Source: Macrostomum lignano (Eukaryota). From it: a stretch of 64,000 bases of DNA. The notes under the pieces were generated by a model. The model saw only the letters and a program-made list of their open reading frames with translations, made no database searches and was not told the DNA's origin. The position numbers and the translations under genes were made by a program. Within the stretch, counting starts at the first letter, position 1, and every line of letters starts with the position of its first letter. Of this stretch, positions 25,962 through 64,000 are shown piece after piece. The stretch covers positions 124,001 to 188,000 of the forward strand of contig NIVC01001263.1 of NCBI GenBank assembly GCA_002269645.1, in the 5' to 3' direction.

Positions 25962-27025
25962 ATGAGATTGGAGTAGAATGGCATGAGATTGGAATAGAAT
26001 GGTATGAGATTGAGTACAATGGCATGAGATTAGAGAAAAATAGCATGAGATTGGAGTAGAATGGTATGAGATTGGAGTAGAATGGTATGAGATTGGAGTA
26101 GAATGGCATGAGATTGAGTAGAATGGTATGAGATTGGAGTAGAATGGCATTAAATTGAAGTAGAATGCTATGAGATTGGAGTAGAATGGTATGAGACTGG
26201 AGTAGAATGGCATGAGACTGGACTAGAATGGTATGAGATTGGAGTAGAATGGCATGAGATTGGAACAGAATGGCATGAAATTGGAGTAGAATGGTATGAG
26301 ATTGGAGTAGAATGGCATGAGACTGGAGTAGAATGGTATGAGATTGAAGTAGAATGGCATAAGATTGGAGTATAATGGCATGAGATTGGAGTAGAATGGC
26401 ATTAGATTGGAGTAGAATGGCATGAGATCGGAGTAGAATGGCATTAGATTGAAGTAGAATGCTATGAGATTGGAGCAGAATGGCATGAGATTGGAGTAGA
26501 ATGGTATGAGATTGGAGTAGAATGGTATGAGATTGGAGTAGAATGGCATGAGATTGGAGTAGAATGGCATTAGATTGGAGTAGAATGGCATGAGATCGGA
26601 GTAGAATGGCATTAGATTGAAGTAGAATGCTATGAGATTGGAGTAGAATGGCATGAGACTGGAGTATAATGGCATGAGATTGGAGTAGAATGGCATTAGA
26701 TTGGAGTAGAATGGCATGAGATCGGAGTAGAATGGCATTAGATTGAAGTAGAATGCTATGAGATTGGAGCAGAATGGCATGAGATTGAGTAGAATGGCAT
26801 GAGATTGGAGTAGAATGGCATGAGACTGGAGTAGAATGGCATGAGATTGGAGTAGAATGGTATGAGATTGGAGCAGAATAGCATGAGATTGGAGTAGAAT
26901 GGCATTAGATTAAAGTAGAATGCTATGAGATTGGAGCAGAATGGTATGAGATTGGAGTAGAATGGCATGAGATTGGAGTAGAATGGCATGAGATTGGAGT
27001 AGAATGGCATGAAATGGAGTAGAAT
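25962..27025. repeat. 21-bp minisatellite (gagattggagtagaatggcat)n
   Basis: Directly visible, ~50 copies. Confidence 0.95.
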
Positions 27026-27659
27026 GGCGCGATATGGAAAAAAGACAACATGGAATCGGAGAATGACGCGAGATTCAGCACTGTTCCGGTGTTCATGGAA
27101 TGTGCCCAATCTTATCAATAAAATTCAATTATTTAGTTCCTGAGCCGAAAGCCAATTCGATAACAATAGTCCGCAGACAGGCGCGGCTGAGGAAGTCCCT
27201 GGACCGTCCGTTCCCACGTGCCCGTTTGACGCCAAGGGCAAGAACCCGCGGCGGGCGGGCGGGCACAAGAGAAAGTGTGTAAGTTTAGCTTTGGCCCCGG
27301 CTTAACTTGAGGCAGCTCCGTGGGAAACTCCCCGGCCCAAGCAGCCCCAGCCTCCCCCCACGCGGCTTCCCATGGGGCTGGCGGCACTGGGAGCCCGCAG
27401 ACTGCAGCCATGGGAATTCGGGCGGCTGGGGAGGCACCGAAGTTTTCCCACTTCGCAGCGGGCGGCGGAGTTATTGAATTCTCTTGTCCGAATCGCGGAA
27501 GAAAAGCAACATTTTGAACAATTTCTAAGGCCGGAACTGGGCGCTGGTTCCCCCAATTTAGATTGCCGATCTTGTGGGAGCATCCCGGTTTCTGATTCTA
27601 TGCAACCTCGAAAGGTTGAAATTCGCGAAACAGGCTGGATTGTTCGTTTCCTGCGCCTG

Positions 27660-33397: not shown

Positions 33398-33464
33398 TCT
33401 TGCGGTGGCGGCTGCTTGCGCAGGAGTGGTGGGCAGCGGCGGGGGATGTGAGCGGTTCGGCGAC

Positions 33465-36400
33465 AGACACTTCAACGAAGACACCCGAGTGACAGAAACC
33501 TAAATAGCAGACACCCGAGTGACAGAAACTTCAATGGTAGACACCCAAGAGACAGACACTTCAACGAAGACACCCGAGTGACAGAAACCTAAATAGCAGA
33601 CACCCGAGTGACAGAACTTCAATGGTAGACACCCAAGAGACATACACTTCAATAGCAGACACTCGAGAGACAGACACTTCAATAGCAGACACTCGAGAGA
33701 CATACACTTCAATAGCAGACACTCGAGAGACATACACTTCAATAGCAGACACTCGAGAGACATACACTTCAATAGCAGACACTCGAGAGACAGACACTTC
33801 AATAGCAGACACTCGAGAGACAGACACTTCAATAGCAGACACTCGAGAGACAGAACTTCAATGGTAGACACCCAAGAGACATACACTTCAATAGCAGACA
33901 CTCGAGAGACATACACTTCAATAGCAGACACTCGAGAGACATACACTTCAATAGCAGACACTCGAGAGACAGACACTTCAATAGCAGACACTCGAGAGAC
34001 AGACACTTCAATAGCAGACACTCGAGAGACAGACACTTCAATAGCAGACACTCGAGAGACATACACTTCAATAGCAGACACTCGAGAGACATACACTTCA
34101 ATAGCAGACACTCGAGAGACATACACTTCAATAGCAGACACTCGAGAGACATACACTTCAATAGCAGACACTCGAGAGACATACACTTCAATAGCAGACA
34201 CTCGAGAGACATACACTTCAATAGCAGACACTCGAGAGACATACACTTCAATAGCAGACACTCGAGAGACAGACACTTCAATAGCAGACACTCGAGAGAC
34301 ATACACTTCAATAGCAGACACTCGAGAGACAGACACTTCAATAGCAGACACTCGAGAGACATACACTTCAATAGCAGACACTCGAGAGACATACACTTCA
34401 ATAGCAGACACTCGAGAGACATACACTTCAATAGCAGACACTCGAGAGACATACACTTCAATAGCAGACACTCGAGAGACATACACTTCAATAGCAGACA
34501 CTCGAGAGACATACACTTCAATAGCAGACACTCGAGAGACAGACACTTCAATAGCAGACACTCGAGAGACATACACTTCAATAGCAGACACTCGAGAGAC
34601 ATACACTTCAATAGCAGACACTCGAGAGACATACACTTCAATAGCAGACACTCGAGAGACATACACTTCAATAGCAGACACTCGAGAGACATACACTTCA
34701 ATAGCAGACACTCGAGAGACAGACACTTCAATAGCAGACACTCGAGAGACATACACTTCAATAGCAGACACTCGAGAGACAGACACTTCAATAGCAGACA
34801 CTCGAGAGACATACACTTCAATAGCAGACACTCGAGAGACATACACTTCAATAGCAGACACTCGAGAGACATACACTTCAATAGCAGACACTCGAGAGAC
34901 ATACACTTCAATAGCAGACACTCGAGAGACATACACTTCAATAGCAGACACTCGAGAGACATACACTTCAATAGCAGACACTCGAGAGACAGACACTTCA
35001 ATAGCAGACACTCGAGAGACATACACTTCAATAGCAGACACTCGAGAGACATACACTTCAATAGCAGACACTCGAGAGACATACACTTCAATAGCAGACA
35101 CTCGAGAGACATACACTTCAATAGCAGACACTCGAGAGACAGACACTTCAATAGAGGACACCCGAATGACACTTCAATAGCAGACACTCGAGAGACATAC
35201 ACTTCAATAGCAGACACTCGAGAGACATACACTTCAATAGCAGACACTCGAGAGACAGACACTTCAATAGAGGACACCCGAATGACACTTCAATAGCAGA
35301 CACTCGAGAGACATACACTTCAATAGCAGACACTCGAGAGACATACACTTCAATAGGAGACACTCGAGAGACATACACTTCAATAGCAGACACTCGAGAG
35401 ACAGACACTTCAATAGCAGACACTCGAGAGACAGACACTTCAATAGCAGACACTCGAGAGACATACACTTCAATAGCAGACACTCGAGAGACATACACTT
35501 CAATAGCAGACACTCGAGAGACAGACACTTCAATAGAGGACACCGAATGACACTTCAATAGCAGACACTCGAGAGACATACACTTCAATAGCAGACACTC
35601 GAGAGACATACACTTCAATAGGAGACACTCGAGAGACATACACTTCAATAGCAGACACTCGAGAGACATACACTTCAATAGCAGACACTCGAGAGACAGA
35701 CACTTCAATAGCAGACACTCGAGAGACATACACTTCAATAGCAGACACTCGAGAGACATACACTTCAATAGCAGACACTCGAGAGACATACACTTCAATA
35801 GCAGACACTCGAGAGACATACACTTCAATAGCAGACACTCGAGAGACATACACTTCAATAGCAGACACTCGAGAGACATACACTTCAATAGCAGACACTC
35901 GAGAGACATACACTTCAATAGCAGACACTCGAGAGACATACACTTCAATAGCAGACACTCGAGAGACAGACACTTCAATAGCAGACACTCGAGAGACATA
36001 CACTTCAATAGCAGACACTCGAGAGACAGACACTTCAATAGCAGACACTCGAGAGACATACACTTCAATAGCAGACACTCGAGAGACATACACTTCAATA
36101 GCAGACACTCGAGAGACATACACTTCAATAGCAGACACTCGAGAGACATACACTTCAATAGCAGACACTCGAGAGACATACACTTCAATAGCAGACACTC
36201 GAGAGACATACACTTCAATAGCAGACACTCGAGAGACATACACTTCAATAGCAGACACTCGAGAGACAGACACTTCAATAGCAGACACTCGAGAGACATA
36301 CACTTCAATAGCAGACACTCGAGAGACATACACTTCAATAGCAGACACTCGAGAGACACTTCAATAGCAGACACCCGAGAGACAGACACTTCAATAGCAG

Positions 36401-38105
36401 ACACTCGAGAGACACTTCAATAGCAGACACCCGAGAGACATACACTTCAATAGCAGACACTCGAGAGACATACACTTCAATAGCAGACACTCGAGAGACA
36501 GACACTTCAATAGAGGACACCGAATGACACTTCAATAGCAGACACTCGAGAGACATACACTTCAATAGCAGACACTCGAGAGACATACACTTCAATAGCA
36601 GACACTCGAGAGACAGACACTTCAATAGAGGACACCCGAATGACACTTCAATAGCAGACACTCGAGAGACATACACTTCAATAGCAGACACTCGAGAGAC
36701 ATACACTTCAATAGGAGACACTCGAGAGACATACACTTCAATAGCAGACACTCGAGAGACAGACACTTCAATAGCAGACACTCGAGAGACAGACACTTCA
36801 ATAGCAGACACTCGAGAGACATACACTTCAATAGCAGACACTCGAGAGACATACACTTCAATAGCAGACACTCGAGAGACAGACACTTCAATAGAGGACA
36901 CCGAATGACACTTCAATAGCAGACACTCGAGAGACATACACTTCAATAGCAGACACTCGAGAGACATACACTTCAATAGGAGACACTCGAGAGACATACA
37001 CTTCAATAGCAGACACTCGAGAGACAGACACTTCAATAGCAGACACTCGAGAGACATACACTTCAATAGCAGACACTCGAGAGACATACACTTCAATAGC
37101 AGACACTCGAGAGACATACACTTCAATAGCAGACACTCGAGAGACATACACTTCAATAGCAGACACTCGAGAGACATACACTTCAATAGCAGACACTCGA
37201 GAGACATACACTTCAATAGCAGACACTCGAGAGACATACACTTCAATAGCAGACACTCGAGAGACATACACTTCAATAGCAGACACTCGAGAGACATACA
37301 CTTCAATAGCAGACACTCGAGAGACAGACACTTCAATAGCAGACACTCGAGAGACAGACACTTCAATAGCAGACACTCGAGAGACATACACTTCAATAGC
37401 AGACACTCGAGAGACATACACTTCAATAGCAGACACTCGAGAGACATACACTTCAATAGCAGACACTCGAGAGACATACACTTCAATAGCAGACACTCGA
37501 GAGACATACACTTCAATAGCAGACACTCGAGAGACATACACTTCAATAGCAGACACTCGAGAGACATACACTTCAATAGCAGACACTCGAGAGACAGACA
37601 CTTCAATAGAGGACACTCGAGAGACATACACTTCAATAGCAGACACTCGAGAGACATACACTTCAATAGCAGACACTCGAGAGACATACACTTCAATAGC
37701 AGACACTCGAGAGACACTTCAATAGCAGACACCCGAGAGACAGACACTTCAATAGCAGACACTCGAGAGACACTTCAATAGCAGACACCCGAGAGACATA
37801 CACTTCAATAGCAGACACTCGAGAGACACTTCAATAGCAGACACTCGAGAGACACTTCAATAGCAGACACCCGAGAGACAGACACTTCAACGGTAGACAC
37901 CGGAGTGACAGACACCTCAATGGTAGACACCGGAATGACAGACACCTGAGTGACAGAAACCTAAATAGCAGACACCCGAGTGACAGAAACTTCAATCGAA
38001 GACACCAGAGTGACAGACACTCGAGAGACGGACCCTTCAACGGTAGACACTGAAGTGACAAAAACTTTAATAAAAGACCCCGAGTGATATACTTCAATGG
38101 CAGAC
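33465..38105. repeat. 4.6-kb 30-bp minisatellite (cacttcaatagcagacactcgagagacata)n with degenerate margins and an internal 1358-bp duplication
   Basis: Directly visible; source of all VSAIEVYVSR, ECLLLKCMSL and IADTRETYTS ORFs. Confidence 0.98.
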
Positions 38106-38459
38106 ACCTGTAGACAAATAAAATAAAAATAACCAGAACTGCACCGCGGCAAAATCAAAAGTCACGTGACACGCAAAGCGATTTCTTAATCACTGTTTAT
38201 TAAAAGTACACTAAAAGCACACAGATATGCGCGCGGCAAGGCAACCAAAATTACTACTGCTAAAAAGCAGAAAACAGTGTATATAACTAGTCAGTGACAA
38301 CCATAAAGTATTATTGTTAGAATTGGTAGTCCGATAGACTATCCAGCACGATAGACTAATTATTTAAAGACTGGCGTATCTGGAGTAAAATATTATTATG
38401 GATAATTTAGGTGCGAAACTGCTGCTCTTAAGCTAGAAACTGGTTTTGAAGTATTTGAG

Positions 38460-38830
38460 AGGGTGGCAGTTAACACCTGAGGATCTGGGAGAGTGGCGGA
38501 TCACACCTGAGGATCTGGGAGGGTGGCGAATCACACCTGAGGATTTGGGAGAGTGGCGGATCACACCTGAGGATTTGGGAGAGTGGCGGATCACACCTGA
38601 GGATCTGGGAGAGTGGCGGATCACACCTGAGGATCTGGGAGAGTGGCGGATCACACCTGAGGATCTGGGAGAGTGGCGGATCACACCTGAGGATCTGGGA
38701 GAGTGGCGGATCACACCTGAGGATTTTGGAGAGTGGCGGATCACACATGAGGATCTGAGAGGGTGGAGGATCACACCTGAGGATCTGGGAGGGTGGAGGA
38801 TCACATCTGAGGATTTGGAAGGGTGGATCG
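38460..38830. repeat. 30-bp minisatellite (cacacctgaggatctgggagagtggcggat)n
   Basis: Directly visible, ~12 copies. Confidence 0.95.
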
Positions 38831-38927
38831 TAAACGCTAATTTCGGATAACGGACTATAGAATTAATAACTACAATTACAGCCCAAACACAAGATCAAAA
38901 GCACCATTTCTCCTTAATAAGAAAATA

Positions 38928-39885
38928 CTTCGGGTGTGTCATAAGTAATGTCACTGCAGGCCTCTGTCTAAAATATGTAGGCACATGGACTTGTGGGTAG
39001 CGTAGCTGCAAAGTATACTTAGTGAAGCAATAGCAGCGCATTTGAGACGTGCATAGGTTGTTTATGGCCCAAGCTATCGCAAGAATACGCCAAGCAGATT
39101 TAGCAAGTGCAACGCGATGAAAAATCGTCTATGCAGCGAACAAAAATCACCATGAATCTCGACAAGACGCCTGCATCAAGCAGATTCGCAAGGTGTTCAG
39201 CAGGCGGGGCTTGAATGACATCCTAAACTGCCTGGTTGCTGAGGATGAAAGCTGGCTCCACCTGGATGGCAAGGGCAGCAAGGCAGACAATCGCTGCTGG
39301 CTGGGAGCTGGGGACTCCAGGGCGACTGTGACCAGGAAGTCCATCTTGGACAAGAAGACCATGCTGCTGGTAGCCTTCACGCCAAATGAACGAGTCTCCA
39401 TCTGCACAACTCCACCGAACACCAAGGTCGATGGCCAGTACTTTATCGACTTTATCCGGCACACTGGAGACCTCTGGCGCAATCTGCGGTCAAATCCATG
39501 TCACCTGGACGAGGTTCTGTGGCAGATGGACACCGCACGGCTGCACACCTGAAGGCTGTTTCGAATTTTCGAGTGAATCTGCTCTGACAGAGTCCCTACA
39601 GCCCGGACTTCAACTTGTGCAAGAGATTCCTGTTCAAATGGCTGAAGGCTGAATTTTCCAAGAAGGTTTCGCAAACCATGAAGAGGTAAAACAGGCCGCG
39701 TTGCACTGGATACGGCAGTTGGAGGAAAAACACCTGTAGGCTGAGGTAGACAAGCTGTATGAGCACTGCCAGAGGGTGATTGATATTGGGGGACTCTATG
39801 TTGTTGAGTGGTACAGTTTTGTTCATCTGCGATTGCAAGTTCGTCTGTTTTCACATCAGTGACATTACTTATGACACACCCGAAG
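38928..39885 (+). mobile_element. Internally deleted, degenerate mariner element (958 bp)
   Basis: Perfect 29-bp TIRs cttcgggtgtgtcataagtaatgtcactg (38928-38956; inverted at 39857-39885); TA on both sides (38926-7, 39886-7); transposase remnants DESW, WQMDTARLH, PYSPD. Confidence 0.93.
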
Positions 39886-42800
39886 TAATGATTTGAACTG
39901 CCGCCCTTCCCCATAGCAACAGGTCTCGAGTGCTCAACCAGCTTGGCCCGGCGCCAAGCCTGTCGCACGAATTCGTGCAGCTCTCGCACTGGAAACGGCA
40001 GCTCAAGCTGGGGCGGAGACTCGCCGCGGCAAATCAGGAATACGGTGGTGGCCGGGGCCAGCTGCTTGGCGCAGGCAGTCAAGGATGGATAATCGTGCGT
40101 GTTGATAAGGCCGCGGCCCGACTGGAGCTCGGTTTCTAGGAAACGGCTGGCGCGCCTGGCAGCCTGGCTGGTCTGCTTCAGCCTGTCCAGATAGTCGATG
40201 GAGCTGCGCGGCAGCACCAGGATGCAGCGCCGACTGCTGACCAAGGCTTTCAGCCGGTCGAGGCCGTCTGTGAGGCACCGACGCGACGGAATGGCGTGCG
40301 ACGACTGCGGAGCGAAAATGGATGGGTAAGCTACTGTTAGTAATGTAAGCGAGCCGACTGACAAACTTGCAGTTAATTAATAATTGGCACTTGAGGAGCT
40401 CACGGTGATTGCTGGCGTCGCCTGAGACACGGCGGACTCCAACTGCTGCACCTGATTGATGAGGCGCAGCTGGGCCAGATTCCGCATCTGGGCATCCCTG
40501 CTGGCCTGTGCGACAGCCGTTGGCCCCAGAAAGTGGCCAGCAGTCGAGTCGAACTCGAACGCCAGCTGGTCATTCTGCACAGCCAGGAAGCCGAACCGGC
40601 GGATGGCGGCCAGGCGCAGGCGCGACTCATCCAGACGGGCAGCCTGGCCGGCGGCGGCGAAGTCCAGGTGGCGTTGCACCGGCTGGAACAGGCGGAGGCC
40701 GCGGGCGTGCGCGTCCTCCGGCAGGGCTGCCGAGCGCTCCGGCTCCGGGCAGATGACGCCGCTGTCCTCGCCAGGCGGAGCGGGCAGCAGGTTGAGCAAA
40801 GCTGACAGACTGTCCCACAGCGGCAGGCAGGAAGACTGTGGAAGTTCGGGTGAAAGGCCGGAGTAACTTTGACTGCTGATATGCAATGCTAGAAGTAGTA
40901 TGACGATTTTTTGGAAACCCTTTGGCAACACCCTTTGTCTGCATTTTGGCGAAAAGCCAAGCTCAAAGCTCACCTGCACTGCTCGGCTGAGGAGATGAGG
41001 CTGGCACAGCATCCAGTCTAGCAGCAGTTTGACAGTCTGCAGCAGGCGAACCCGACTAATTGCCAATTCAACGGCCTCGGCAGCGGCCGCAGTGGAATCG
41101 TCCTTTTGCGCATCCGCCTCACAAACAGTCGAGACGTTTGCGTTGGAATTTTCTGCATCAGCAGGCGGGCCATCCTGACCCAACTCTGCAGCCTCCGACT
41201 TATCGTCGTTCTCTTCGTCGTGAAACATCAACGCTGATGGAATGCCGTAGCTGAAGCAAAACGACGGCAGGCCGCCGCCGCCGCCAACGCTGGTCGACGG
41301 TGGGTCGGCCGCAGCCATTGCGGCCTCATCTTCGGCGTTGCTGTCCTCTCCTTCCCTTCCAACTTCTCCATCCTCGCCTTCAACCTCCTCGTCATCCTCG
41401 TCGTAACCGAACGCCAACTGACAGTCGCTGGACTCGCCCGATGACGAAAAAGCATCGCCTTCACTGCCAGAGCCGCGCCGTCGCCGCCTCCTTCGACGTC
41501 GTCGACGCAGCCTCGGAGCGGAGAAGCCGTGAAAATCGCCGGCAGCATCGTCTTCGTCTTCGTCCTCCCCGCCGCCTTCGACCTCTTCTGCAGCTGCATC
41601 GTCTTCATCGACATCGCTGTCATCAGCAGTCGGCTCCCCAGCGTCAAGCTCAGCCGTGGGTGCCGCAGTCGCCACGGTCTGCAGCGCGTGCCGGCACCTG
41701 GCCAGGGCGCAGCGCAGCACGCAGGCAAACAGGCCCAGGCAGAAGGCGGTGCAGGCGTGCGCATGTCGGGAGTTGGCGGCCGCCAGCGAGTCCAGGCAGA
41801 GGACGGCGGCCAGCGCGGCCTGCAGCACAGCAGAGTCGGCCAGGCGGTGCGGCCGCATCGGGTCGACCTCGGAGGCGCGCACGGCCAGGCATGCGGCTTC
41901 GTCGCCATCGTCGCAGTCGGACAGGCAGACTGAGAGGCCGGCAAGGACTGACTGGCACAGCGCGTTCAGCTCGGCGTCAAGCTGACGGTAGTTTTGACGC
42001 CGCTGATGCTGCATCAGCTGGTGAGGCTGCAGCAGGCGGCCAATCAGATAAACAAACCGCACAGCGAACTGCTTCACGGGCTTGTGCGGTCGGCCGGCTT
42101 CGGCAGAACCGGCAGCTGCCGCCGCGGAATCCAACGGTGGCAGGGATTCGAATCGGCGCTGATTTTTGTTTAAAATTTTGGCCAGGTTGCGTCTGGAGCC
42201 TTCGAACGGCTGCTCGCAGGCCAGGCATCTGCAGGAACAAAATAAGTAGAAAGGATTTCGAATGCGATTATCGGTGTGCGTATTAGTGTGGAATTATCCA
42301 GATTCCAGCTGTGTGTTCGTCCTCCCTAGCAGCTAAGTTTTAACAAACAGCAGCGCACCTAAGATAATAATACACGGCAGTGAGGTTGTAGTAGTTGCCA
42401 ACATCCAATGTGCCCAGCTGGTTGTACGGCAGGCCAATCATGGGCTCAAATCTGGCAGCGGCGCCGTAATAGCGCTGAACAAGCGCCAGCGCCACTTCGC
42501 CTTGAAACTCGCGCAGATATCTGTACAGATCCCCGATGTGCATCAGGCACCTGTGCACGGCGCCGCGCGCCCAGTCCGCGGCGGCAGCGTTGGCGCCAGC
42601 ATCGGTAGTCAGGTCGGCGCTAAGTAGAAGCTTCGGCGCCGGTGCAAAATCGGCGCAACCAACAGCGGCCACCTCGGCGAGGCCGGCAGCGTCGTCAGCT
42701 GCCACCGGATACTCCAGCAGCACCCGGGAGAGCAACTGATTGTAGAAGCCCAGCCCGCTGATCAGATGCGCCCGGTACAGGGCCTCAACCTGCCCCGAGA

Positions 42801-43059
42801 GCCTGTTGGACTGGCGGTACTTTTTAATGCAAGCCAACACCTCGTAGAAGCCTTTGCGCCATAGAATGTCTTCGCCTTTGGCGCCGAAATCAGCCGGCGT
42901 CAGAAAGATAATCTTCAATAGCGTGGACTTCAATCGGTGACGCAGGCTGGCCGCATCTGGGCAGAACAGAGCAACCTCCGGCTCATGTGGATGCTGATGA
43001 TAGATCTCATTCAGGCGGCTAATGCACTCCTCTACTACTCTATAGGTGACTTTCTCCAT
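39501..43059 (-). CDS. SMG5: Nonsense-mediated decay factor SMG5 (EST1B): 14-3-3-like/TPR domain and C-terminal PIN domain
   Basis: Exons 43059-42359, 42228-40974, 40835-40404, 40304-39501. Motifs LWRKGFYE, HRCLMHIGDLYRY, IGLPYNQLGTL, YYYLRC, LWDSLSALLNLLP, MRNLAQLRL, LPRSSIDYLDRLK. As assembled, the last exon reads through into the mariner at 39885. Confidence 0.9.
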
Positions 43060-44828: not shown

Positions 44829-46194
44829 CGAGGGATGTTCCATAAGTACTTATACTTTTGCATGCTGCTCAGGAACTACGCAACCAATCATTGTAAGTTT
44901 TATGTCGCTGGAAAGCGGCTTTACTCATCTTTAATCTGTCGCCAAAATCATTTCGTTCTGTCAACTATGTCAAAAGTTACAACAAAAAACGTAGTCAAAG
45001 GTCACCCATAGACTTACAAGAAATTTTCAAAATCAAAACTTCAAAGTTCAGCACGCAGAGTTATTTCGGATTCTACATAATGCATTCTTTTTTGCTTCAT
45101 AAGCGAATGCCACACCCTTTTCGTCTATGGAAAATACTGGCCTAAGCTTTCACAGCATCTTAATCTTAAGATCACAGCATCTTAATCTTGTAAAGTTTCA
45201 CCACCTTGGCTGCTGCTGCATCACCATGGATGTGAACTCAAGGGAAGGACAGCGCGCTGCAATTTTTACCCTCTGGAAACTCGGAAAAAAGCGATCAGAG
45301 ATTTATGCGGATTTATGCAACATTCATGGAGCTAATGCGGTGAGCAGGATGACCGTCTACAACTGGGTTGAGCAGTTCGAAGCAGGAAGGACCAATCCTC
45401 CGGTAAAAGCTCAAAGGACGCACATGGAAAGAAGATCATGCTGTCTCTGTTTTTCGACTGCAATGGTCCTCTAACTGTCAAGTTTTTGGAGCCAAACACT
45501 ACAATAAACTCTGAGCGCTACGTTGAAACGCTAACAAAGCTGCATCATGACATCCAGAACAAGCGTCGTGAAAATCCCAGATCTTTCATTCTTCATCATG
45601 ACAATGCAAGGCCTCATACAGCACAAAAGACAGTCGAGGCAATCAGCAAGCTGAAGCTCCATCTTCTACCTCACCCTCCTTACTCTCCAGACCTGGCACC
45701 AGCAGACTTTGCTTTATTTCCAGAGTTGAAGCGCCATCTGAAAGGACGCGTGTACGAGACCAGGAACCAGATCGAGGAGGAAGTCCGCAGAATTCTGCTG
45801 TATGTCATCCCCCGACAGCTGTACGCAGAAGCCATCAAAAGCATGTTTAACAGGTGGACCAAGTGCATCAACTCCGGTGGAAACTACGTTGAGAAGGTGT
45901 CGGTACCGACTGAGGATGAGTGACAAAGAAGTCAAACTTTCTGTCATCAACAACGCGCCTCTGTTTTCATGCTTGCCATTGTAGTTGTTGCTCTTTAAAT
46001 TTCTTGTAAGTCTATGGGTGACCTTTGACTACGTTTTTTGTTGTAACTTTTGACATAGTTGACAGAACGAAATGATTTTGGCGACAGATTAAAGATGAGT
46101 AAAGCCGCTTTCCAGCGACATAAAACTTACAATGATTGGTTGCGTAGTTCCTGAGCAGCATGCAAAAGTATAAGTACTTATGGAACATCCCTCG
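44829..46194 (+). mobile_element. DD34D mariner derivative with 198-bp TIRs and an internally deleted transposase
   Basis: TIRs 44829-45026 and 45997-46194 look identical by eye; TA on both flanks. Transposase from ATG 45226 (first HTH) joins out of frame to ..MLSLFFD, HDNARPH-x-PYSPDLAPAD (34 aa between D2 and D3), stop 45923. The second HTH and first catalytic Asp are missing. Confidence 0.95.
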
Positions 46195-48715
46195 TAATAT
46201 AACACCAGATAACACCAGAAAGCTGCATCATAGTCTATGGCCAGAATGTTTGATATTTTTTGACTTGGAAAAAGGTCTATGGTCTAGTTGAAACATGAAT
46301 GATTTTTAACAAGTTGACAAATAACAAATAATTAAAAGTAAAGTTTGCTTAGCAAGCCACATGTATATGCTGCATGCCACATGAATAAGACTTTACAAGC
46401 CTTATTTGAAATATACTTAGAGGAATTATGGTATTAACTAAACCCAATAAAAACATTTGGGAATATCCTATATTAGATTTCCTACTATTATAGCATATAA
46501 AGCTTTTACTGCTTGTTGGCAATTTGACCATAATACTTTTTATTTATTCTGTAAAGACTTGTTTACTTGTTAATGTTTTGGCCATAGACTATCCTGTTGC
46601 AGCTTTCCAGTGTCCGATATATTATAAGAATTACAATCACTTTGGTGACAAGTCACTTTGGCGATAGCCATTTTGGCGACACATTTGGATCACTTTGGCA
46701 ACAACTTTGGCCAATATATTTTTTGCCAATGAAACTTTACGATTAAAGTGTGATTTATCCACTTTAATATGATATTATAATGTTATAAATTTATTTGGCA
46801 TATTGGCATATATAGGCACATACACTATGTCACTCCATTGCAGAAAAAAAGAAAAAGAAATAAACATGCATTAAAAGCATTAAAACAAAAGTTTCATAAA
46901 GTATAAATTTTTACATTTAGGCCTATTCAAAAGTATACATGCACATGACATATGCTTAATGCCATTAGAAAGCTACTCAATTATATATTGATAATATTGG
47001 TAAACATGGATCATGGTATCTTATCTTGTTTCCATTTTTATATTAATAATATTTAAAGTATACCCCTTTTCTATTTTCCATATCGCACAACTGAAAAAGC
47101 CCACACTGGAACTCCTTATCTATGACTATGTAAAGCATAGCCTGTACGCTGTAGCTGTAGTAGGTATGGACATAAAATGATCAAAATTAAAATTTTCAAG
47201 TTTTATCTACTAGAACTGGATTCTATGCGAGTGCCTAAAAACATTAGTAAAAACAGGAATATCATTAATAAAACCAAATAAAATTTATTTTAAATGCACT
47301 TATTAGACACAAAGTGTCACTTTTTGATTACAGAAGACACAGTCACTTTAACCTTTTTTAATTATAAAAGCCAAAAAATAAAGAAGTCGAGGAAGTTTGG
47401 CGATTGCATGGTCAACGACCCGAGGCACACACACACGACTAAGCTGCGCTGAATAGATGCAAATATTATCACAGAATCATATTATTTTGTTGATGAAAAA
47501 CCTTTTTTGGATGCTTACTGGATATATATTGTGTTAAACTGTTGTCTCTTTTATATTTTGTTATAGCAGTTACAATAATTTAAAGTGCAATTTGCGGAAA
47601 TTTTATTTATCGTGGTCGTGAGACGCATTTGTTTCCCCATTGATATTCGCATTGATATTCAAATTTTAACAAAAGCAAAATACTAAAAGCAACCCGTAGC
47701 ATGAAACTTTACACAGAGTAAACTGCAACCGTGAAACGACTATTGGTCAAGTTTCAGCTCGATATGTAACTTTGGCTCTGAGCAGGAGCGATTTTCGATG
47801 TGTTCCATTTAAAATACACGTGATTCCAAAATTCATATTGATATTCGAGTACAGGTACTTCTGCTTCACCGATCTTGATGAAACTTTACACAGAGTAAAC
47901 TGCAACCGTGAAACGACTATTGGTCAAGTTTCAGCTCGATATGTAACTTTGGCTTTGAGCAGGAGCGATTTTCGATGTGTTCCATTTAAAATACATGTGA
48001 TTCCAAAATTCATATTGATATTCGAGTACAGGTACTTCTGCTTCACCGATCTTGACGAAACTTTACACAGAGTAAACTGCAACCGTGAAACGACTATTGG
48101 TCAAGTTTCAGCTCGATATGTAACTTTGGCTCTGAGCAGGGGCGATTTTCGATGTGTTCCATTTAAAATACATGTGATTCCAAAATTCATATTGATATTC
48201 GAGTACAGGTACTTCTGCTTCACCGATCTTGACGAAACTTTACACAGAGTAAACTGCAACCGTGAAACGACTATTGGTCAAGTTTCAGCTCGATATGTAA
48301 CTTTGGCTTTGAGCAGGAGCGATTTTCGATGTGTTCCATTTAAAATACATGTGATTCCAAAATTCATATTGATATTCGAGTACAGGTACTTCTGCTTCAC
48401 CGATCTTGACGAAACTTTACACAGAGTAAACTGCAACCGTGAAACGACTATTGGTCAAGTTTCAGCTCGATATGTAACTTTGGCTCTGAGCAGGGGCGAT
48501 TTTCGATGTGTTCCATTTAAAATACATGTGATTCCAAAATTCATATTGATATTCGAGTACAGGTACTTCTGCTTCACCGATCTTGACGAAACTTTACACA
48601 GAGTAAACTGCAACCGTGAAACGACTATTGGTCAAGTTTCAGCTCGATATGTAACTTTGGCTCTGAGCAGGAGCGATTTTCGATGTGTTCCATTTAAAAT
48701 ACATGTGATTCCAAA

Positions 48716-51203
48716 CAACAACAACAACAACAGAGTACGCTGCCAGTTCGCAAAAGCAGCGTCAGATGGCGCGCTTCGAAGCTTGGGCGCGAACAAAAGC
48801 CGCACCGCCGGCAGAGTCCGGGGCGCCGGCGTCAGCCAGCAGACAGTCGACGTAGCGCCGAGTCCTCGCCTGTCCCCGCCGGTAGGGTGCCTGCAACGTA
48901 AGTAGCAGCACCTCCTGCACCGGCTCCGGACAGTAGGCCTCGGCGCGGATGACGTGGCCTGCCAGCTGGAGTCGCCGACGGCGCAGCAGATCGCTAGGAC
49001 GGGCCAGGCCGGCGCGATGATAGAGCGCCGTGTTGGTGACTCGCTCGTTGCCGATCTTGAAGGCGGCGCGCAGCAGGCCAGCGTGCGCCGCGTCGACTTG
49101 AGCCTCGAGCGAGTCTATCAGCGTCCAGGTCTCGGCGTTGTATAACAGGACGGTCTCGATCACCGCCTGGAACAGCGCCGCCCTCTGGCGGTCCGGTAGG
49201 GCCTCGGACTGCAGGACTGACCTTATAGAACGAAAGGCAGCCCAGGCAAGTCCTCGTCGACGCCGCAGATCCTCGCGGACGTCGGGAACCAGACCGCCGA
49301 GGTAGACGAACTGCTGACATCTTGGAAGCTCACTCGCCTGTCCGTCAGCGCCTCGGCAGAAGATTGCAGCCTCGGTGTCGTCCGGCACGCATAGCACGAC
49401 GGTCTTCTGCGTGTTGACCACCAGGCCGACGCTCGCCGCAACGGCAACCAGTCTGTCCAGCTGTCGTTGGGCGCCCTCGACGGTCGAGGACAGCAGGGCG
49501 AGGTCATCGGCGTAGCCAAGCACGCTGAGCCGTCTCTCCGGTTGGCGTCGACCCACGCGTCGCCGCAGCAGGAAGCCGTCGTCGTTGGAAGGCAGAGCAG
49601 TCCGTAGCACCCAGTCAAGCACCAGAATAAATAGGAACGGCGCTAGCGTATCTCCCTGGAGCACCCCGGAGGATGTCTCGAAGAAATCCGATAGGCCGTC
49701 CGGTGTTGAGACAGCAGCCGTCGTGCCGTGGTATAGCGCCATGACAGCAGAAATCAGCAGGTCTGGCACGTTGTACGCACGGAGCACCTCTGGGAGCGCG
49801 TCCCTCACGACCGAGTCGAAGGCCTTCCTGAAATCGACGAAGATCAGGATCAGGGTCAACTGGCGGATGCGCGCCTCCTCGATGACTCGCCGAAGAGCCA
49901 GGATCTGCGTCACTGTGCTGCGATGGGGCCGGAATCCGTTCTGCTCAGGCCACAGGTACGGGTCCAGCACAGTCTGCAACCGCGATAGCAGCATGCGGCT
50001 GAACAGCTTCGCGGCGCAGGATTGTAGGCAGATGCCTCGATGCTCCTCGAGCTTGGTGGTGCCCGGCTTCTTTGGAATGGCGACGATGTGCGCCGTGGTC
50101 CATTCGTTTGGCGCCACCTCACCGGAAAGCACGCGGTTCATCACTCTGGCGACCTCAGTGGCCACGCAGTGGATCCGCAGCGCCTCGGTGGGCATCTCGT
50201 CCGGACCAAGCGCTTTGGCGCCCGGCGACTGCCGAGCGAACTTCACAACGTCGGCTGTACTGACTGGGGCAACGTTGAAGCTCTCCTCCGCCGGCAACGG
50301 CGTCTCCGGCGGCAGCCTCAGATTTTCTGGAAGCGGAGGGGGCGGCGCGTTGACAATGGCGGTGAAGAACTCGCGCAGCTCGTACCTGCGCTCATCCGGA
50401 ATGTCGCCTGCCTGGTTGAGCGCGATGCGCCGCTTTCGCCCCGTCAGAGTGTTGATGACGGACCAGGCCACGCGCCCTCTGGAATCGGGCCCTGCGGCAG
50501 AGACGGCTTGGGTGGCGTCATCGACAGCGGACTGCTGCCGCTGCAGGTAGACAGCCGCCAGAGCCTCCTCCGCCTCGCGAGTTTGCCGCCCACTCAGACG
50601 GAGCCTCTCCAGATCTTCCCTCGCTTCGTCGATCGCGGGTCGTCCTGCCAGACCGCTGGGCCGGTCGCATCAGTGGGACTGCTTGCTCCGCATCGGCTCG
50701 AACTGCAGCGCTCACCTCCGCGTACTCGGCTCCTCCACGCTTGTCGCCCAGCGCAGTGACAAAGGCACCGGCAAAGCGACGTAGTAGCGCCGCGGTGGCC
50801 GCTTTGGCGGACGGTAGAGCGGGTCCCGAAGCCGAAGGTCGCAGATGAGCAGCCGATGGTCGGACCGCAGAGCCAGCGGCGTAATGGTGCGGCAGTTGGT
50901 GACGCGGCGGCGCACACGAAAGCGCACAAGCACGTGGTCGAGCTGTGCCAGCCTCCGCGTAGCGTTCCGGCCGCGCGCGTTCCGCCGCCTCCGCTTGCAG
51001 CCCACGAAGGTCGCGAGCCTGCCCGGTGACTTGCGGAATCTGGTGTTGGCCGACACCATGTCCTGTCTCTCCAGGAAGTCCTCTAGCGCTCCGGTGTTGC
51101 CGTTCTCGCGCGCTGTCACAAACAGCGATCGCTCGGACCTACGCAGAACTGCGTTCAGGTCTCCGAGAATGACCACTGTGTCACGTTGCGCCATCTCCTC
51201 CAC
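48716..51203 (-). mobile_element. 5'-truncated non-LTR retrotransposon (APE + RT, RTE-like clade)
   Basis: Endonuclease motifs GDLN, LDH, SDH (51203-50712). RT ORF 50471-48762 with QNGFR, DFRKAFDSV, GVLQGDTLAP, YADD, YLG. Short (CAA)n/(TTG)n tail at 48716-48732. Frame disruption between EN and RT. Clade assignment is less certain than LINE identity. Confidence 0.93.
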
Positions 51204-51958
51204 CTGTACTCGAACATCAATATGAATTTTGGAATCACATGTATTTTAAATGGAACACATCGAAAATCGCCCCTGCTCAGAGCCAAAGTTACATATCGAG
51301 CTGAAACTTGACCAATAGTCGTTTCACGGTTGCAGTTTACTCTGTGTAAAGTTTCGTCAAGATCGGTGAAGCAGAAGTACCTGTACTCGAATATCAATAT
51401 GAATTTTGGAATCACATGTATTTTAAATGGAACACATCGAAAATCGCCCCTGCTCAGAGCCAAAGTTACATATCGAGCTGAAACTTGACCAATAGTCGTT
51501 TCACGGTTGCAGTTTACTCTGTGTAAAGTTTCGTCAAGATCGGTGAAGCAGAAGTACCTGTACTCGAATATCAATATGAATTTTGGAATCACATGTATTT
51601 TAAATGGAACACATCGAAAATCGCCCCTGCTCAGAGCCAAAGTTACATATCGAGCTGAAACTTGACCAATAGTCGTTTCACGGTTGCAGTTTACTCTGTG
51701 TAAAGTTTCGTCAAGATCGGTGAAGCAGAAGTACCTGTACTCGAATATCAATATGAATTTTGGAATCACATGTATTTTAAATGGAACACATCGAAAATCG
51801 CTCCTGCTCAGAGCCAAAGTTACATATCGAGCTGAAACTTGACCAATAGTCGTTTCACGGTTGCAGTTTACTCTGTGTAAAGTTTCATGCTACGGGTTGC
51901 TTTTAGTATTTTGCTTTTGTTAAAATTTGAATATCAATGCGAATACCAATGGGGAAAC

Positions 51959-58090: not shown

Positions 58091-59079
58091 TCGGCCTCGC
58101 CCTTTTCCTAGAAACCAATCAGCTCTGCTGGGGCCTGCGCCGCTGTCTGTCGGAGCCTGTCCGGCTCGCATCCCCGCAGATGCAGTTTTCTCTATTACTG
58201 CGTCAATGGCTGGCATGTAGCTCAATTTGTCTGACAAGTTTACCTGTCTGCTTCTCTAGAATTCCACTGTCTCAGCTCACTATTTGAACCTTTGTCCCCA
58301 TCTGTATCAGACTGCAGAGCGAATCGCGGCAGCTGCTCAACTGTCTGCTTCATCCGTCATTGCTCCGAGAATTCTACTATTAGTAGTTTATATATAATTA
58401 ATATTGATGCGCAATTATTGAGCTTTTTCTCACTTTTTCTACTTAGCTTAGCGAATAAAAATTCTCTGGCAGCCTGGTCGCTAGCTCGCGTTGAAGCTAC
58501 TTACCTTGTCAGTAGTATGTGTCATGAGTTGCGCATTGTACAGCTACGCGTCATGTGTACTTTTAATCTAAAATATGCCATTGTTAAGCGGGGCCTTCTG
58601 TACAAAATGTGCCGCTTATTCCTTTTGAAGCGTGTTTTGTACTTAACCAGTTTTTGTGGCGTGCTACCCCAGCCTCTGTATTATAAGATTTTGGATTTTA
58701 TCCCTTTTTAATTTTACAAGCAATTTACATGTGTGGAAATGCTACATTGTTTGCTATTGGTAGAACTGCATCCTGATTAGAACCGCGCACCCTTTGCTGA
58801 CATTTCTTTAGTCAAAGATTTTTTCTGTCCGGATTCCAGAGTGCCTGAGACTGACTTTTATTGTAGAATTTTTTCCTTTGTTTTATTAATTCAGAATTTT
58901 GCTCATTTTCGTTACTTAAAACTCAGTTTAAGATGACACTACTTTTAGTAGTTTAAATTCGGTGGCTGAGTTCATTTCTTGTTTTTCAAGCTGAGCAAAG
59001 GTTGAGTATTTTACTTAAATTTAAATCATTTGTTATTTAAACTGACACCAAATTTAAATTTAAATTAAGTTTGGTGTCA

Positions 59080-60480
59080 GTTTATTGATTGGGAATGTCA
59101 GTTTATTGATTTGTAATGTCAGTTTATTGATTGGGAATGTCAGTTTATTGATTGGGAATGTCAGTTTATTGATTGGGAATGTCTGTACAGCTACTGTACA
59201 GCTGTACAGCTACAGTCTGTACAGCTTTATTGATTGGGAATGTCAGTTTATTGATTGGAAATGGCTGTTTATTGATTGGAAATGGCAGTTTATTGATTGG
59301 AAATGGCAGTTTATTGATTGGGAATATCAGTTTATTGATTGGGAATGTCAGTTTATTGATTGGGAATGTCAGTTTATTGATTGGGAATGTCAGTTTATTG
59401 ATTGGGAATGTCAATTTATTGATTGGGAATGTCAATTTATTGATTGGGAATGTCAGTTTATTGATTGGAAATGTGCAGTTAATTAATTGGGAATGTCAGT
59501 TTATTGATTGGAAATGGCAGTTTATTTATTGGAAATGTCAGTTTATTGATTGGAAATGTCAGTTTATTGATCTAAATGTCAGTTTATTGATTTGTAATGT
59601 TCGTTTATTGATTGGAAATGTCAGTTTATTGATTGGAAATGTCAGTTTATTGATTGGAAATGTCAGTTTATTAATTGGAAATGGCAGTTTATTGATTGGA
59701 AATGCCAGTTTATTGATTGGAAATGCCAGTTTTTTGATTGGAAATGTCAGTTTATTAATTGGAAATGGCAGTTTATTGATTGGAAATGCCAGTTTATTGA
59801 TTGGAAATGCCAGTTTATTGATTGGAAATGTCAGTTTATTGATTGAAAAAGCCAGTTTATTGATTGGAAATGGCAGTTTATTGATTGGGAATATCAGTTT
59901 ATTGATTGGAAATGTCAGTTTATTGATCTAAATGTCAGTTTATTGATTTGTAATGTTCGTTTATTGATTGGGAATGTCAGTTTCTTGATTGGAAATGTCA
60001 GTTTATTGATTGGGAATGTCAGTTTATTGATTGGAAATGCCAGTTTATTGATTGGGAATATCAGTTTATTGATTTGTAATGTTCGTTTATTGATTGGGAA
60101 TGTCAGTTTATTGATTGGAAATGTCAGTTTATTAATTGGGAATGGCAGTTTATTGATTGGAAATGTCAGTTTTTTGATTGGAAATGGCAGTTTATTGATT
60201 TGTAATGTTCGTTTATTGATTGGGAATGTCAGTTTATTGATTGGAAATGTCAGTTTATTAATTGGAAATGGCAGTTTATTGATTGGAAATGTCAGTTTTT
60301 TTGATTGGAAATGGCAGTTTATTGATTGGGAATGTCAGTTTATTGATTGGAAATGTCAGTTTATTGATTGGAAATGTCAGTTTATTAAATGTGAATGTCA
60401 GTTTATTGATTGGGAATGTCAGTTTATTGATTGGAAATGTCAGTTTATTGATTGGAAATGTCAGTTTATTGATTGAAACG
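59080..60480. repeat. 21-bp minisatellite (gtcagtttattgattgggaat)n
   Basis: Directly visible, ~65 copies. Confidence 0.96.
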
Positions 60481-61489
60481 TCAGCTTTAGACGTGGATGC
60501 CATTTTGAACAGGTGAAAAATTAAAATTACTGCTATTATTAACAAAATTGTGCACAGCTCCCAAAGTGCCATCAAGCAGTCGGTGCCATTTTCTAACCGA
60601 GCGGCAAGCCAGTTTTCATTCCACATTCCTTCTGTCCTGAATTAATTGATCCTGTTCGAATCGCCGGCACTTTTCACTTACACCCCCCGCTTACACACCT
60701 TTGTCTCCTCAGCCAAGCTGGGGGTTGTTTTGTCTGTCCGTGTACTTTTGTAAATTTGTGTCTTTTATAGGAAAGTTATTAAAGATTGAAGAGCGTCCCC
60801 GCCCGCTCTACTTACTGTTAGTAGGCAGTCAGGGCAATCTTCTACTTTTGTGTGCATCCGTTTGATTTTGCGCTAATTGTTTTTTTTTAATTTTAGTTGT
60901 TACTTTCAAATAAATATTGCTGTCTGCAAGTGTCTTGGCCTGCTCTAATCTGTGCCTTCTGCCTCTATTGAGCGGGACTTTTCAACCCCCCTCCCCTTAA
61001 TTTTCCTCATCGCGCGTGGCCTATGAAGTCTGTTTTTTGCTTTCCTTTGTCTCCCTGTGTGTGCCCGTGTGCCTGCCTGTTTACTGTGCGCAGAGTCGGT
61101 GGAAATTCCAGCTCAGAGCCGCTGCTCTGGTATTCCTGCTTCATTCCCCCTGTTCGCCAGTGGCACTCGCTGTATATAACTATATAGCACCGCGCGAGTG
61201 TCCAAAGAGCCTTTTTATTTAAATAAATAAACTGCTTTTTGTCATACTAAATATACTATTGTTATTATTCATAGCTTTTACTGACTGAGAAGCCGGCTCC
61301 ATAATTGTTATGAGTGCCTTCTCGTTTAAACGGAAAATCCTTCACTATTGTGCCAATTGTCAACGGTGTTTTTTGATCTCCAGGGCGACACGTTTGCCCA
61401 GTTGCTGGTGTTTGGCGGAATCGAACCTAGGGGCTCTGACATGATGCGTTTATTTGGACCCTCATTCAGGCCAATTGACATGACCCCTG

Positions 61490-62090: not shown

Positions 62091-62289
62091 ACCTTTTGGC
62101 TTGCAAACTAATTGTTGTGGTTCCATTTGCCATGACACTAGTTGATAAACTATGAATAATCAATATGAATCTTCCTGTTACATGTACATGTACGACTCCA
62201 TGTACACTCACTGTTATGATAACGCCATTTATGGCCTCTGTATGAAAATGGTTCTGACCACACCCCCTATGAATCCCTGTTCACTAGTC

Positions 62290-63010
62290 ACTCTTCGGTA
62301 TGACCAACCCTCTATGACCCCTGTGCCACAAATCACTCATCATTATGACCAATCCTCTATGACCCCTGTGCCACTAATCACTCATCGTTATGACCAACCC
62401 TCTATGACCCCTGTGCCTCAAATCATTCATATTTATGACCAACCCTCTATGACCCCTGTGCCACTAATCACTCATCGTTATGACCAACCCTCTATGACCC
62501 CTGTGCCACTAATCACTCATCGTTATGACCAACCCTCTATGACCCCTGTGCCACTAATCACTCATCGTTATGACCAACCCTCTATGACCCCTGTGCCACT
62601 AATCACTCATCGTTATGACCAACCCTCTATGACCCCTGTGCCACTAATCACTCATCGTTATGACCAACCCTCTATGACCCCTGTGCCACTAATCACTCAT
62701 CGTTATGACCAACCCTCTATGACCCCTGTGCCACTAATCACTCATCGTTATGACCAACCCTCTATGACCCCTGTGCCACTAATCACTCATCGTTATGACC
62801 AACCCTCTATGACCCCTGTGCCACAAATCACTTATCGTTATGACCAATTCTCTATGACCCCTGTGCCACTAATCGCTTATATTTATGACCAACCCTCTAT
62901 AACCCCTGTGCCACAAATCACTTATCGTTATGACCAATTCTCTATGACCATTGTGCCACTAATCACTCATCGTTGTGACCAACCCTCTATGACCCCTGTG
63001 CACCAAGTCA
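62290..63010. repeat. 42-bp minisatellite (cgttatgaccaaccctctatgacccctgtgccactaatcact)n
   Basis: Directly visible; source of ORF 62152..63153. Confidence 0.95.
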
Positions 63011-64000
63011 CTAATCCCTATGCCTCCGCCTCCACAACCCCACGCAGCCACACAATGTACAGTTTATGCTTTCATACAGGAATTAAACCTCTAATACTCG
63101 CGGCAGATGTCCCAAACCAAATCCCCAGGGTATGTAAGCAAATTTCCTACTGATTTATGAATCAATAATGCTCGCATGAGGTCAGCGAGTGTCTCAAACT
63201 GACTCCGGACCCCCGCTGCTCGGCATTAGCAGCCCCCGAGTTTCACTGCATGGCAGCTGCGAATCCCGCAGCGCAGCGGGCAATGTGCTTAGCGAGTCCG
63301 CACCTGTGGCTCGGTGCTCGGCCAATTTGCATGTCCGGCTGTCTCCGCCGCCAGCTCGCGCATGCAGCCGACAAGTTTCCCGCTGAGCTGCCTATCGCCT
63401 CGGCCCATTGTTGCTCATTGCGACCTTCAGATTTAATTGAGCCTGTTGATCAAGTCTGGCGGGTCGGGACTCCCCGCTGAGCACCAAAACCATATATATA
63501 AACTGTTGCTTGAGCACTGCTCATCCAGAATTTCCATCTCTGTCAACGTCTCCGTCTGGACTTGGCCTCGCGACCACTGCAGTTTCGAATTATAATACAA
63601 AGCTAGTCAACTCCGAACATTTGAAGGTCGATCGCTTAATAGCTTGGTAAGTTCTGCTGTGTGTGTTTCGATTTAGCTTTGAGAAGCCCGGGATAGCAGT
63701 GTGTGTAGCATCACTGGATTAAAGCTTATCTCTGTTCAATACAGCGGGCGCTTCTGTCTGACCTCATAACTGAGTATCCATTTCTACTCAGTTTAGTCGG
63801 AGCCTTTCAACCGGATTTCACTTGTCTCCGGCTCTTGGCTTTGTCTCTAAAGCTGATTCTCTTTGAGAAAGCAAAGCAGCTCTCAGTGTATCTGCATGAT
63901 CAGCCCTGTTCTCCTATATTTCATCCCAGTCTACCACAGCTGCCCATTGTTTGTCTGCTTGTCTGTCTGTCTACCTTTTTGTCTACCTGCCTGTCTATCT

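Follow-up and report, generated by a model that had tools for sequence, protein, structure and literature searches.

A mariner insertion near the end of SMG5 in Macrostomum lignano and the chimeric C-terminus that it would create

What becomes of a gene of the core RNA-surveillance machinery when a DNA transposon lands within its last codons, and does the foreign sequence that is then read become part of a working protein? The question is raised by a stretch of 64,000 nucleotides from Macrostomum lignano (GenBank assembly GCA_002269645.1, Mlig_3_7; contig NIVC01001263.1, positions 124,001 to 188,000 of the forward strand), hereafter the window, in which the minus strand carries SMG5, a gene of nonsense-mediated decay (NMD), and the annotated last exon of SMG5 runs into a 958-bp mariner element. 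A sequence-only reading of the window had proposed that the element is a recent coding-sequence insertion, that it swaps a native tail of nine residues for 127 codons of antisense transposon sequence with a new stop and a new 3′ untranslated region (UTR), and that an NMD factor may here tolerate or even have domesticated transposable-element (TE) sequence. The coordinates which it gave for the element, the exon and the stops all check to the base. Based on the comparisons reported here, we propose that the locus holds an ordinary recent mariner insertion in what is probably a dispensable tail of one SMG5 homeolog, and that the chimeric open reading frame (ORF) is more likely than not a fortuitous by-product.

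SMG5 and the mariner element in its last exon

The host gene consists of four exons on the minus strand (Table 1), the borders of which are all GT-AG and the in-frame join of which yields 1063 codons; the translation is identical to the GenBank proteins PAA51103.1 and PAA70146.1 (BOX15_Mlig016494g1 and g3). This gene is SMG5, as had been read from the sequence: exon 1 matches the Pfam domains EST1 (E 6.7e-14) and EST1_DNA_bind (E 1.2e-6), the named best protein matches are SMG5 proteins (Haplochromis, a cichlid, and Echinococcus), and the UniProt name of the M. lignano protein is SMG5. The last exon, which begins at 40304 after a ..ccgcag acceptor, gave no match to Pfam PIN_4 at E<=1, and Pfam as a whole returned nothing at E<=1 for the last exon, the extension and the 119-aa transposase ORF of the element; therefore, the PIN and mariner identities were established via PDB sequence searches, structure prediction and custom profiles. 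In the PDB sequence search (phmmer), the last exon matches the human SMG5 PIN domain 2HWY (E 2e-6; motif LPRSSIDYLDRLK vs IPRTVIDGLDLLK). For the last exon without the element, an AlphaFold2 (AF2) model gives a predicted local distance difference test score (pLDDT) of 89-97 over the first 70 residues of the PIN domain, a Foldseek search with this model places 2HWY at the top (E 2e-5) and the SMG6 PIN domain next, and a profile of orthologue C-termini scores 88 bits on the exon. Since the named best matches are all SMG5 and the structural top match is SMG5 over SMG6, the gene is the SMG5 orthologue and not an SMG6 or SMG7 paralogue.

In its architecture the M. lignano protein resembles SMG5 (EST1B) of other animals, with N-terminal EST1/14-3-3-like and EST1_DNA_bind regions, an acidic middle that is long and disordered, and, at the C-terminus, a PIN-like fold that most resembles that of human SMG5 and in which the motif ..P-R-x-x-I-D-x-L-D-x-L-K.. 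is kept. It differs in that the PIN domain (40304-39888, minus strand) is markedly shorter than in other animals and has deletions in its second half, in that the first acidic position, VPDT in human, reads IPSR with a Ser, and in that the tail behind the conserved Trp counts 32 residues without the element, above any of 53 orthologues, and 150 with it. The I-D-x-L-D motif reads IDYLD in M. lignano and IDGLD in human, and the second Asp of the human motif we take, by our own numbering, to be D893. The catalytically dead SMG5 PIN domain completes the SMG6 nuclease active site via D893 and is essential for SMG6 cleavage (PMC12923823), so that a bulky tail beside this domain could matter; a short C-terminal tag on a human SMG5 construct is compatible with activity in vitro (PMC12923823). 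A literature search on SMG5, Mlig016494 or NMD in Macrostomum found nothing relevant.

The inserted element is a mariner-family, non-autonomous deletion derivative that lies antisense to SMG5. Its ends form an inverted repeat of 31 nt (38926-38956 and 39857-39887) with 100% complementarity, composed of a 29-bp terminal inverted repeat (TIR), CTTCGGGTGTGTCATAAGTAATGTCACTG, and the flanking TA; the TIR sequence has two matches in the window, with 0 expected from 100 shuffles. When its frames are conceptually joined, the transposase remnant aligns with residues 125-343 of the 345 of Mos1 (E 2e-5 to 7e-5), and SETMAR is aligned also; this alignment along the Mos1 catalytic domain, the TIRs and the TA target-site duplication (TSD) bear out the earlier assignment to mariner. 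DESW, MDTA and YSPD stand at the three acidic motif positions of the Mos1 alignment, the D-D spacing hanging on the manual joining of frames. Pfam DDE_3 reaches 25.3 bits, below its cutoff of 28.6, and the mariner-specific Pfam model gave no match. The element thus shares with Mos1 the TA duplication, short perfect TIRs and a remnant that spans the whole catalytic domain, whereas it measures 958 bp against about 1.3 kb for Mos1-type elements, is missing the DNA-binding domain, is frameshifted, and belongs to a family only distantly related to Mos1. An autonomous copy would hold an intact ORF of ~340 aa with a helix-turn-helix; here the N-terminal DNA-binding region is absent, and at least two frameshifts and two stops occur within the 958 bp.

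The junction lies in the codon of Tyr936 (39887-39885), which is made of the TA target and the first base of the element, and the gene sequence ..AATCATTA continues into CTTCGGGTG.. in the filled copy and into TTTTCTTATT.. at the empty site. The frame that had been described as open past ..SSNHY is open indeed, as 40304-39501 (minus strand) translates into ..GKGGSSNHY, 127 further residues (FGCVISNV...HRTSSR, with the stretch ..VPQYQSPSGSAHTACLPQPTGVFPPTAVSSATR.. among them) and a TGA at 39503-39501. The native end proposed earlier was likewise recovered by joining 39886 to 38925 in a script, which restores ..SSNHYFLIKEKWCF and the TGA at 38897-38895, namely ..SSNHY-FLIKEKWCF-stop, with a native end that would be residue 945. 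The insertion is located 23 codons past Trp913 and 9 codons short of the native stop.

The GenBank coding-sequence (CDS) models derive from genome-guided RNA-seq transcript models and TransDecoder ORFs (PMC5730564), an origin which suggests that transcripts of the filled copy reach at least 39501. That the gene is transcribed across the element, that the extension is translated and that it is nearly neutral are inferences, as is mobilisation in trans; the make-up of the element, the empty site, the relative age of the insertion, the ORF and the identity of the gene are shown by the sequences. A pattern search on the gene strand found no AATAAA inside the element, and the first one downstream of the stops is a candidate poly(A) signal (Table 1); if it is used, the 3′ UTR would grow from ~0.7 kb to ~1.3 kb.

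Table 1. Positions of the SMG5 exons, the mariner element and associated features in the window
Feature	Position	Strand	Basis and remarks
SMG5 exon 1	42359..43059	-	ATG 43059-43057; EST1 / 14-3-3-like region; GT donor after 42359
SMG5 exon 2	40974..42228	-	acidic / poly-Arg low-complexity middle; AG acceptor and GT donor; join equals P0005 exactly
SMG5 exon 3	40404..40835	-	helical region before PIN domain; GT-AG; fits orthologue profile ..MRNLAQLRL..
SMG5 exon 4 CDS as annotated	39501..40304	-	PIN-like domain, tail, 127 element-derived codons, new stop TGA 39503-39501
TT run	39956..39957	-	TTT in g2, which shifts the g2 frame to ..QALAPGQAG-stop; single gap at 39957 in pairwise alignment with L001
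Trp913 codon, then RRAK	39954..39956	-	agrees with the end motif F-x-x-K-W-K/R of orthologous SMG5 proteins but for one additional residue
TGA out of frame in the window copy	39934..39936	-	stop of the g2-type frame; P0006, P0001 and P0007 all end ..PGQAG
TA target-site duplication, gene-proximal	39886..39887	.	first two bases of the Tyr936 codon
Mariner element, non-autonomous, 958 bp	38928..39885	+ (transposase sense; antisense to SMG5)	TIRs, TSD, Mos1 alignment
Right TIR	39857..39885	-	translated within the SMG5 extension as annotated (..Y-FGCVISNVT..)
127 element-derived codons of the C-terminal extension	39504..39884	-	translation; sole relative P0157
Transposase catalytic-domain remnant	39121..39811	+	frames +2, +1, +3; two internal stops; six-frame translation, tblastn blocks, Mos1 alignment
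Left TIR (5′ relative to transposase)	38928..38956	+	29/29 match to the other end
TA target-site duplication, distal	38926..38927	.	flanks the left TIR
Displaced native tail FLIKEKWCF (38924-38898) and native stop TGA (38897-38895)	38895..38924	-	in-silico excision; now 3′ UTR; TGA reads CGA in g2
30-bp minisatellite, 12 copies	38459..38826	.	TRF; directly downstream of the gene, probably in the 3′ UTR
First AATAAA downstream of the stops, candidate poly(A) signal	38196..38201	-	pattern search

The empty site and the age of the insertion

Assembly Mlig_3_7 holds three SMG5 loci, which are the window copy (L003), a second element-bearing copy on NIVC01003504.1 (L002), and the element-free homeolog g2 on NIVC01000236.1 (L001), which encodes protein P0006. 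Comparing paralogous copies in search of an empty allele had been proposed together with the original reading, and g2 supplies that allele: it reads AAATCATTATTTTCTTATTAAGG, in which the TA occurs once, just as predicted for the empty site. The second filled copy carries the same insertion with 2 mismatches over the 3174 bp of the gene, 0 over the 958 bp of the element and 0 over 301 aligned bp downstream, and its flanks differ structurally from those of the window. The exons of g2 diverge from those of the window copy by 1.4-2.1%, the introns by 3-9% and the downstream sequence by 8.8%, with a synonymous divergence (dS) of 0.042 and a ratio of nonsynonymous to synonymous divergence (dN/dS) of 0.23 overall and of 0.07-0.11 in the folded domains (EST1 and C-terminal). 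M. lignano is a recent hidden tetraploid, and the extra large chromosomes of the DV1 line account for duplicated blocks of 95% identity or more that add up to 180 Mb in Mlig_3_7, which is a PacBio/Canu assembly polished with Illumina and RNA-seq reads (PMC5730564).

Taken together, the copies indicate that the transposition is real and that it came after the genome duplication. The earlier claim of a recent insertion is upheld by the single-TA empty site in g2, the identical TIRs, and the 958 of 958 element bases that the filled contigs share; in the simplest history, the window copy and g2 had split as homeologs before the element arrived, and the filled contigs are alleles or very recent duplicates. 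Assembly artefact as the source of the insertion is ruled out by the TSD, the perfect TIRs, the two filled contigs and the exact empty site. Mariner excision normally leaves a footprint; g2 has none there, and precise excision from g2 is an unlikely source of its empty site.

The sequence around the target points to a tail under little constraint. Within the 22 codons Trp913-Tyr936, 3 differences from g2 occur in 66 nt and all are nonsynonymous in the window frame (L/P, M/I, K/M), a nucleotide divergence of 4.5% that resembles dS and the introns; in the 270 codons before the tail, 2 differences are nonsynonymous and 10 are synonymous. The terminal helix of the AF2 model (exon residues 111-125, EFVRQAWRRAKLVEH) has a pLDDT of 52-64, and the last 13 residues ahead of the insertion fall below 50. 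The element thus landed in a tail that shows no constraint and is predicted to be disordered, beyond all that orthologues conserve. The notion of an NMD factor tolerating TE sequence is thus retained in part, in that the insertion is probably tolerated, while such tolerance is not remarkable for a predicted-disordered tail that diverges at the neutral rate in a genome with at least three SMG5 copies.

As to how the locus arose, we propose that after the whole-genome duplication an internally deleted mariner could have been mobilised, presumably in trans by a transposase of its family, and inserted by cut-and-paste at the TA in the Tyr936 codon of one SMG5 homeolog. Through antisense entry in a near stop-free frame, translation would proceed across the right TIR and 127 codons to a TGA inside the element, whereby the native nine-residue tail and its stop would become 3′ UTR and the 3′ UTR would gain 573 nt of element. 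Persistence on two near-identical contigs could be owed to the 14-3-3-like and PIN domains having stayed intact, to the position of the new stop in the last exon with no downstream intron, for which exon-junction-dependent decay is not expected, and to the presence of other SMG5 copies in a neopolyploid, repeat-rich genome.

The T run and the frame of the native end

Whether the element interrupts codons or lies behind them hangs on a single base. At a T run g2 reads GGCTTTGGCG and the window copy GGCTTGGCG, with one extra T in g2 (about 11100-11120 of L001, the counterpart of 39957-39934 in the window), and copy-diagnostic single-nucleotide differences stand nearby at 39963 (A/G) and 39940 (T/C). 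The proposed coding-sequence insertion is correct insofar as the annotated CDS runs into the element, whereas the target TA is coding only if the TT frame at 39957-39956 is true. In the alternative frame, which is without the Trp, the g2 protein ends ..ELHEFVRQALAPGQAG and P0006, P0001 and P0007 read ..FVRQALAPGQAG, each followed by the stop; in window coordinates this stop corresponds to 39936-39934 and precedes the TA target by 46 nt, which would leave the element in the 3′ UTR.

The frames were compared with the C-termini of orthologues by local alignment. Among 92 orthologue matches of at least 800 aa, 53 close with the block ..G-[IV]-x-[VL]-E-x-[IV]-x-x-F-x-x-K-W-[KR].., after which a median of 8 residues remain (range 4-26), Echinococcus SMG5 for instance reading ..FEPLHQFAQRWKSRGRSEL. 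The window frame reads ..FPVRELHEFVRQA-W-RRAK.., in which the hydrophobic spacing is kept up to the Phe and is followed by the Trp and basic residues. Because a wrong frame would rarely yield Trp-basic-basic at that place, we judge the window frame to be quite likely the ancestral one on these alignments, in which case the extra T of g2 is a frameshift of later origin or else a consensus error that escaped correction. A profile hidden Markov model (HMM) of 54 orthologue C-termini gives 88.0 and 88.1 bits for the frame variants and does not discriminate between them, because the shortened M. lignano PIN domain aligns only to ..GLINTH. Global MAFFT alignment with full-length orthologues was rejected, as it misplaced the tail, putting the conserved W on the extension or G134 on the conserved Gly.

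Several observations weigh against the window frame and against translation into the element. Orthologues ending before 39900 through a different last exon had been named at the outset among the findings that would refute a coding insertion, and what is observed comes close to this, since P0006 and, from the older assembly, P0001 and P0007 use the frame that stops before the element, while the end motif favours the window frame. Apart from this end, P0001 matches the window protein at 100% identity, and therefore the TT at 39957-39956 could be a PacBio consensus or polishing artefact from near-identical copies. In the window frame the spacing between the conserved Phe and the Trp exceeds that of every orthologue by one residue, and given this extra residue the motif argument is good but not conclusive. 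An exhaustive search of 1.84 billion representative proteins for a close outgroup gave a next relative only 33% identical, and the frame was therefore judged from distant orthologues. Finally, the RNA-seq behind the annotated model may consist of multi-mapping reads of other element or SMG5 copies.

These points could be accommodated if SMG5 truly ended ..FVRQALAPGQAG, the TT were an error or a very recent one-base deletion, and the element were a 3′ UTR insertion that makes no chimeric protein, an explanation which we consider unlikely. Three independent gene models ending before the element, one of them otherwise indistinguishable from the window protein, would agree with it, as would a short-read polished PacBio/Canu assembly of a genome with near-identical duplicates, the neutral-rate divergence after 39954, and the restored TGA being CGA in g2. 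The protein would nevertheless lose the Trp-plus-basic motif that over half of the long orthologues (53/92) keep, tapeworm and fish SMG5 included, and W-RRAK would have arisen in the window frame at almost exactly the place of the motif, which is rare by chance. In addition, the AF2 terminal helix runs through Trp913, at moderate confidence only, and the TT is found in two contigs that differ elsewhere.

Origin and meaning of the extension

If the window frame is followed, the length of the read-through calls for explanation. Among mononucleotide shuffles of the 381 nt, 0.2% stay open; of all positions and frames of the window, which is repeat- and GC-rich, 10% run on for 127 codons or more before a stop, and the element, when read in minus frame 2, is made up of open runs of 127, 117, 5 and 67 codons, namely three stops in 958 nt. 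Because one tenth of positions open in this way and the element frame is near stop-free, the long read-through is not evidence of selection, and any antisense insertion in minus frame 2 would give a long extension. Nor can any selection be recorded in the extension, because the two filled copies are identical. The sole database relative of the extension is P0157, with 66% identity over 87 aa. P0157 itself (UniProt A0A1I8HR76), a 175-aa 'uncharacterized protein' of M. lignano, is read from a related mariner copy in the antisense frame and probably owes its annotation to an error of gene prediction; it demonstrates that diverged members of the family, too, have an open antisense frame.

SETMAR, the classic fusion of a mariner with a host gene, and other chimeric proteins with TE-derived C-termini offer the nearest comparison, in that the SMG5 ORF as annotated likewise continues into a mariner and gains a C-terminus, a stop and a 3′ UTR. 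In SETMAR the transposase is read in its sense frame, the fusion is conserved among anthropoid primates, and DNA-binding activity has been kept. The SMG5 chimera, in contrast, reads the antisense strand of a degraded element and is a copy-specific, very young event in which nothing points to selection or function.

That SMG5 has domesticated the extension as a functional, TE-derived C-terminal domain, as the sequence-only reading had entertained, is accordingly very improbable, and we do not maintain it. The rarity of so long a frame among shuffles, the annotation of the chimeric product and the presence of the filled allele on two contigs are what could be brought forward for domestication. 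The zero divergence between the filled copies leaves no record of selection, however, the extension is missing from homeolog g2 and has no homologue except the antisense ORF of a related mariner, its openness is explained by the near stop-free antisense frame, and the element, with TIRs and TSD still intact, looks freshly inserted. The opposite fate, in which the filled copies, damaged or silenced by the insertion, are redundant and decaying toward pseudogenes while NMD relies on the element-free g2, appears less far-fetched though still distinctly improbable. A neopolyploid with at least three SMG5 copies could afford such a loss, a 127-residue unrelated tail beside the PIN domain, which forms a composite nuclease with SMG6, could interfere, and the 3′ UTR is lengthened; yet the filled copies retain an intact four-exon ORF with no other lesion, the dN/dS between homeologs in the folded domains is as low as stated above, though not assignable to one lineage, and g2 itself carries a frameshift that removes the conserved Trp, so that it is not obviously the better copy. 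An ordinary recent insertion in a dispensable tail therefore remains the explanation that we prefer.

A further consequence may be considered, although we hold it to be quite unlikely. With the element-free homeolog truncated by a +1 frameshift directly ahead of the conserved Trp in the terminal PIN helix, no assembled DV1 copy of SMG5 would keep the ancestral C-terminus, the mariner-bearing copies alone would have a complete PIN domain, and the working SMG5 would carry the 127-residue antisense-mariner tail, with an mRNA that carries the element-extended 3′ UTR. Mammalian SMG5 mRNA is reportedly an NMD target through its own 3′ UTR, and if the filled copies were indeed the only ones with a complete PIN domain, the element-extended 3′ UTR of the SMG5 mRNA could alter NMD autoregulation. 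The insertion would be biologically interesting only if the filled copies proved to be the functional ones. If the annotation is followed, it is a clean and datable case of a DNA transposon making a new C-terminus, stop and 3′ UTR in a core RNA-surveillance gene, with the empty site kept in the homeolog. For the annotation it means that the 1063-aa GenBank SMG5 of this regeneration model is a gene-transposon chimera, already public but unremarked, and that the three SMG5 copies disagree on the C-terminus through a one-base T-run difference, which is relevant to RNAi, CRISPR and NMD work in M. lignano.

The surroundings of the gene are rich in repeats. The 30-bp minisatellite directly downstream is present in both other SMG5 copies also, with differing lengths, and further downstream a different 30-bp unit is repeated 151 times over 33462-37930 (4.5 kb); both arrays vary in length among the three SMG5 loci and make long spurious ORFs on both strands. 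Upstream of SMG5, a second, unrelated mariner remnant lies at 45348-45923 (plus strand) with a 161-aa ORF that matches Pfam Transposase_1 (E 2e-8) and DDE_3; with the transposase of the SMG5 element it shares only 27% identity, and tblastn found it in the window locus (L003) and not in the fetched stretches of L002 or L001. A reverse-transcriptase ORF at 48762-50471 (minus strand; Pfam RVT_1, E 2e-28) marks a retroelement, which is flanked by 177-bp tandem-repeat arrays at 47703-48715 and 51202-51886 in opposite orientation, an unusual arrangement. In total, more than 20 tandem-repeat arrays with units of 12-177 bp were found in the 64 kb (for example 764-1517, 2198-2779, 25962-27028, 59075-60489 and 62251-63016), among which the 21-bp array at 59075-60489 contains most of the excess AATAAA matches. 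This tandem-repeat load fits the 15% of simple and tandem repeats reported for the genome.

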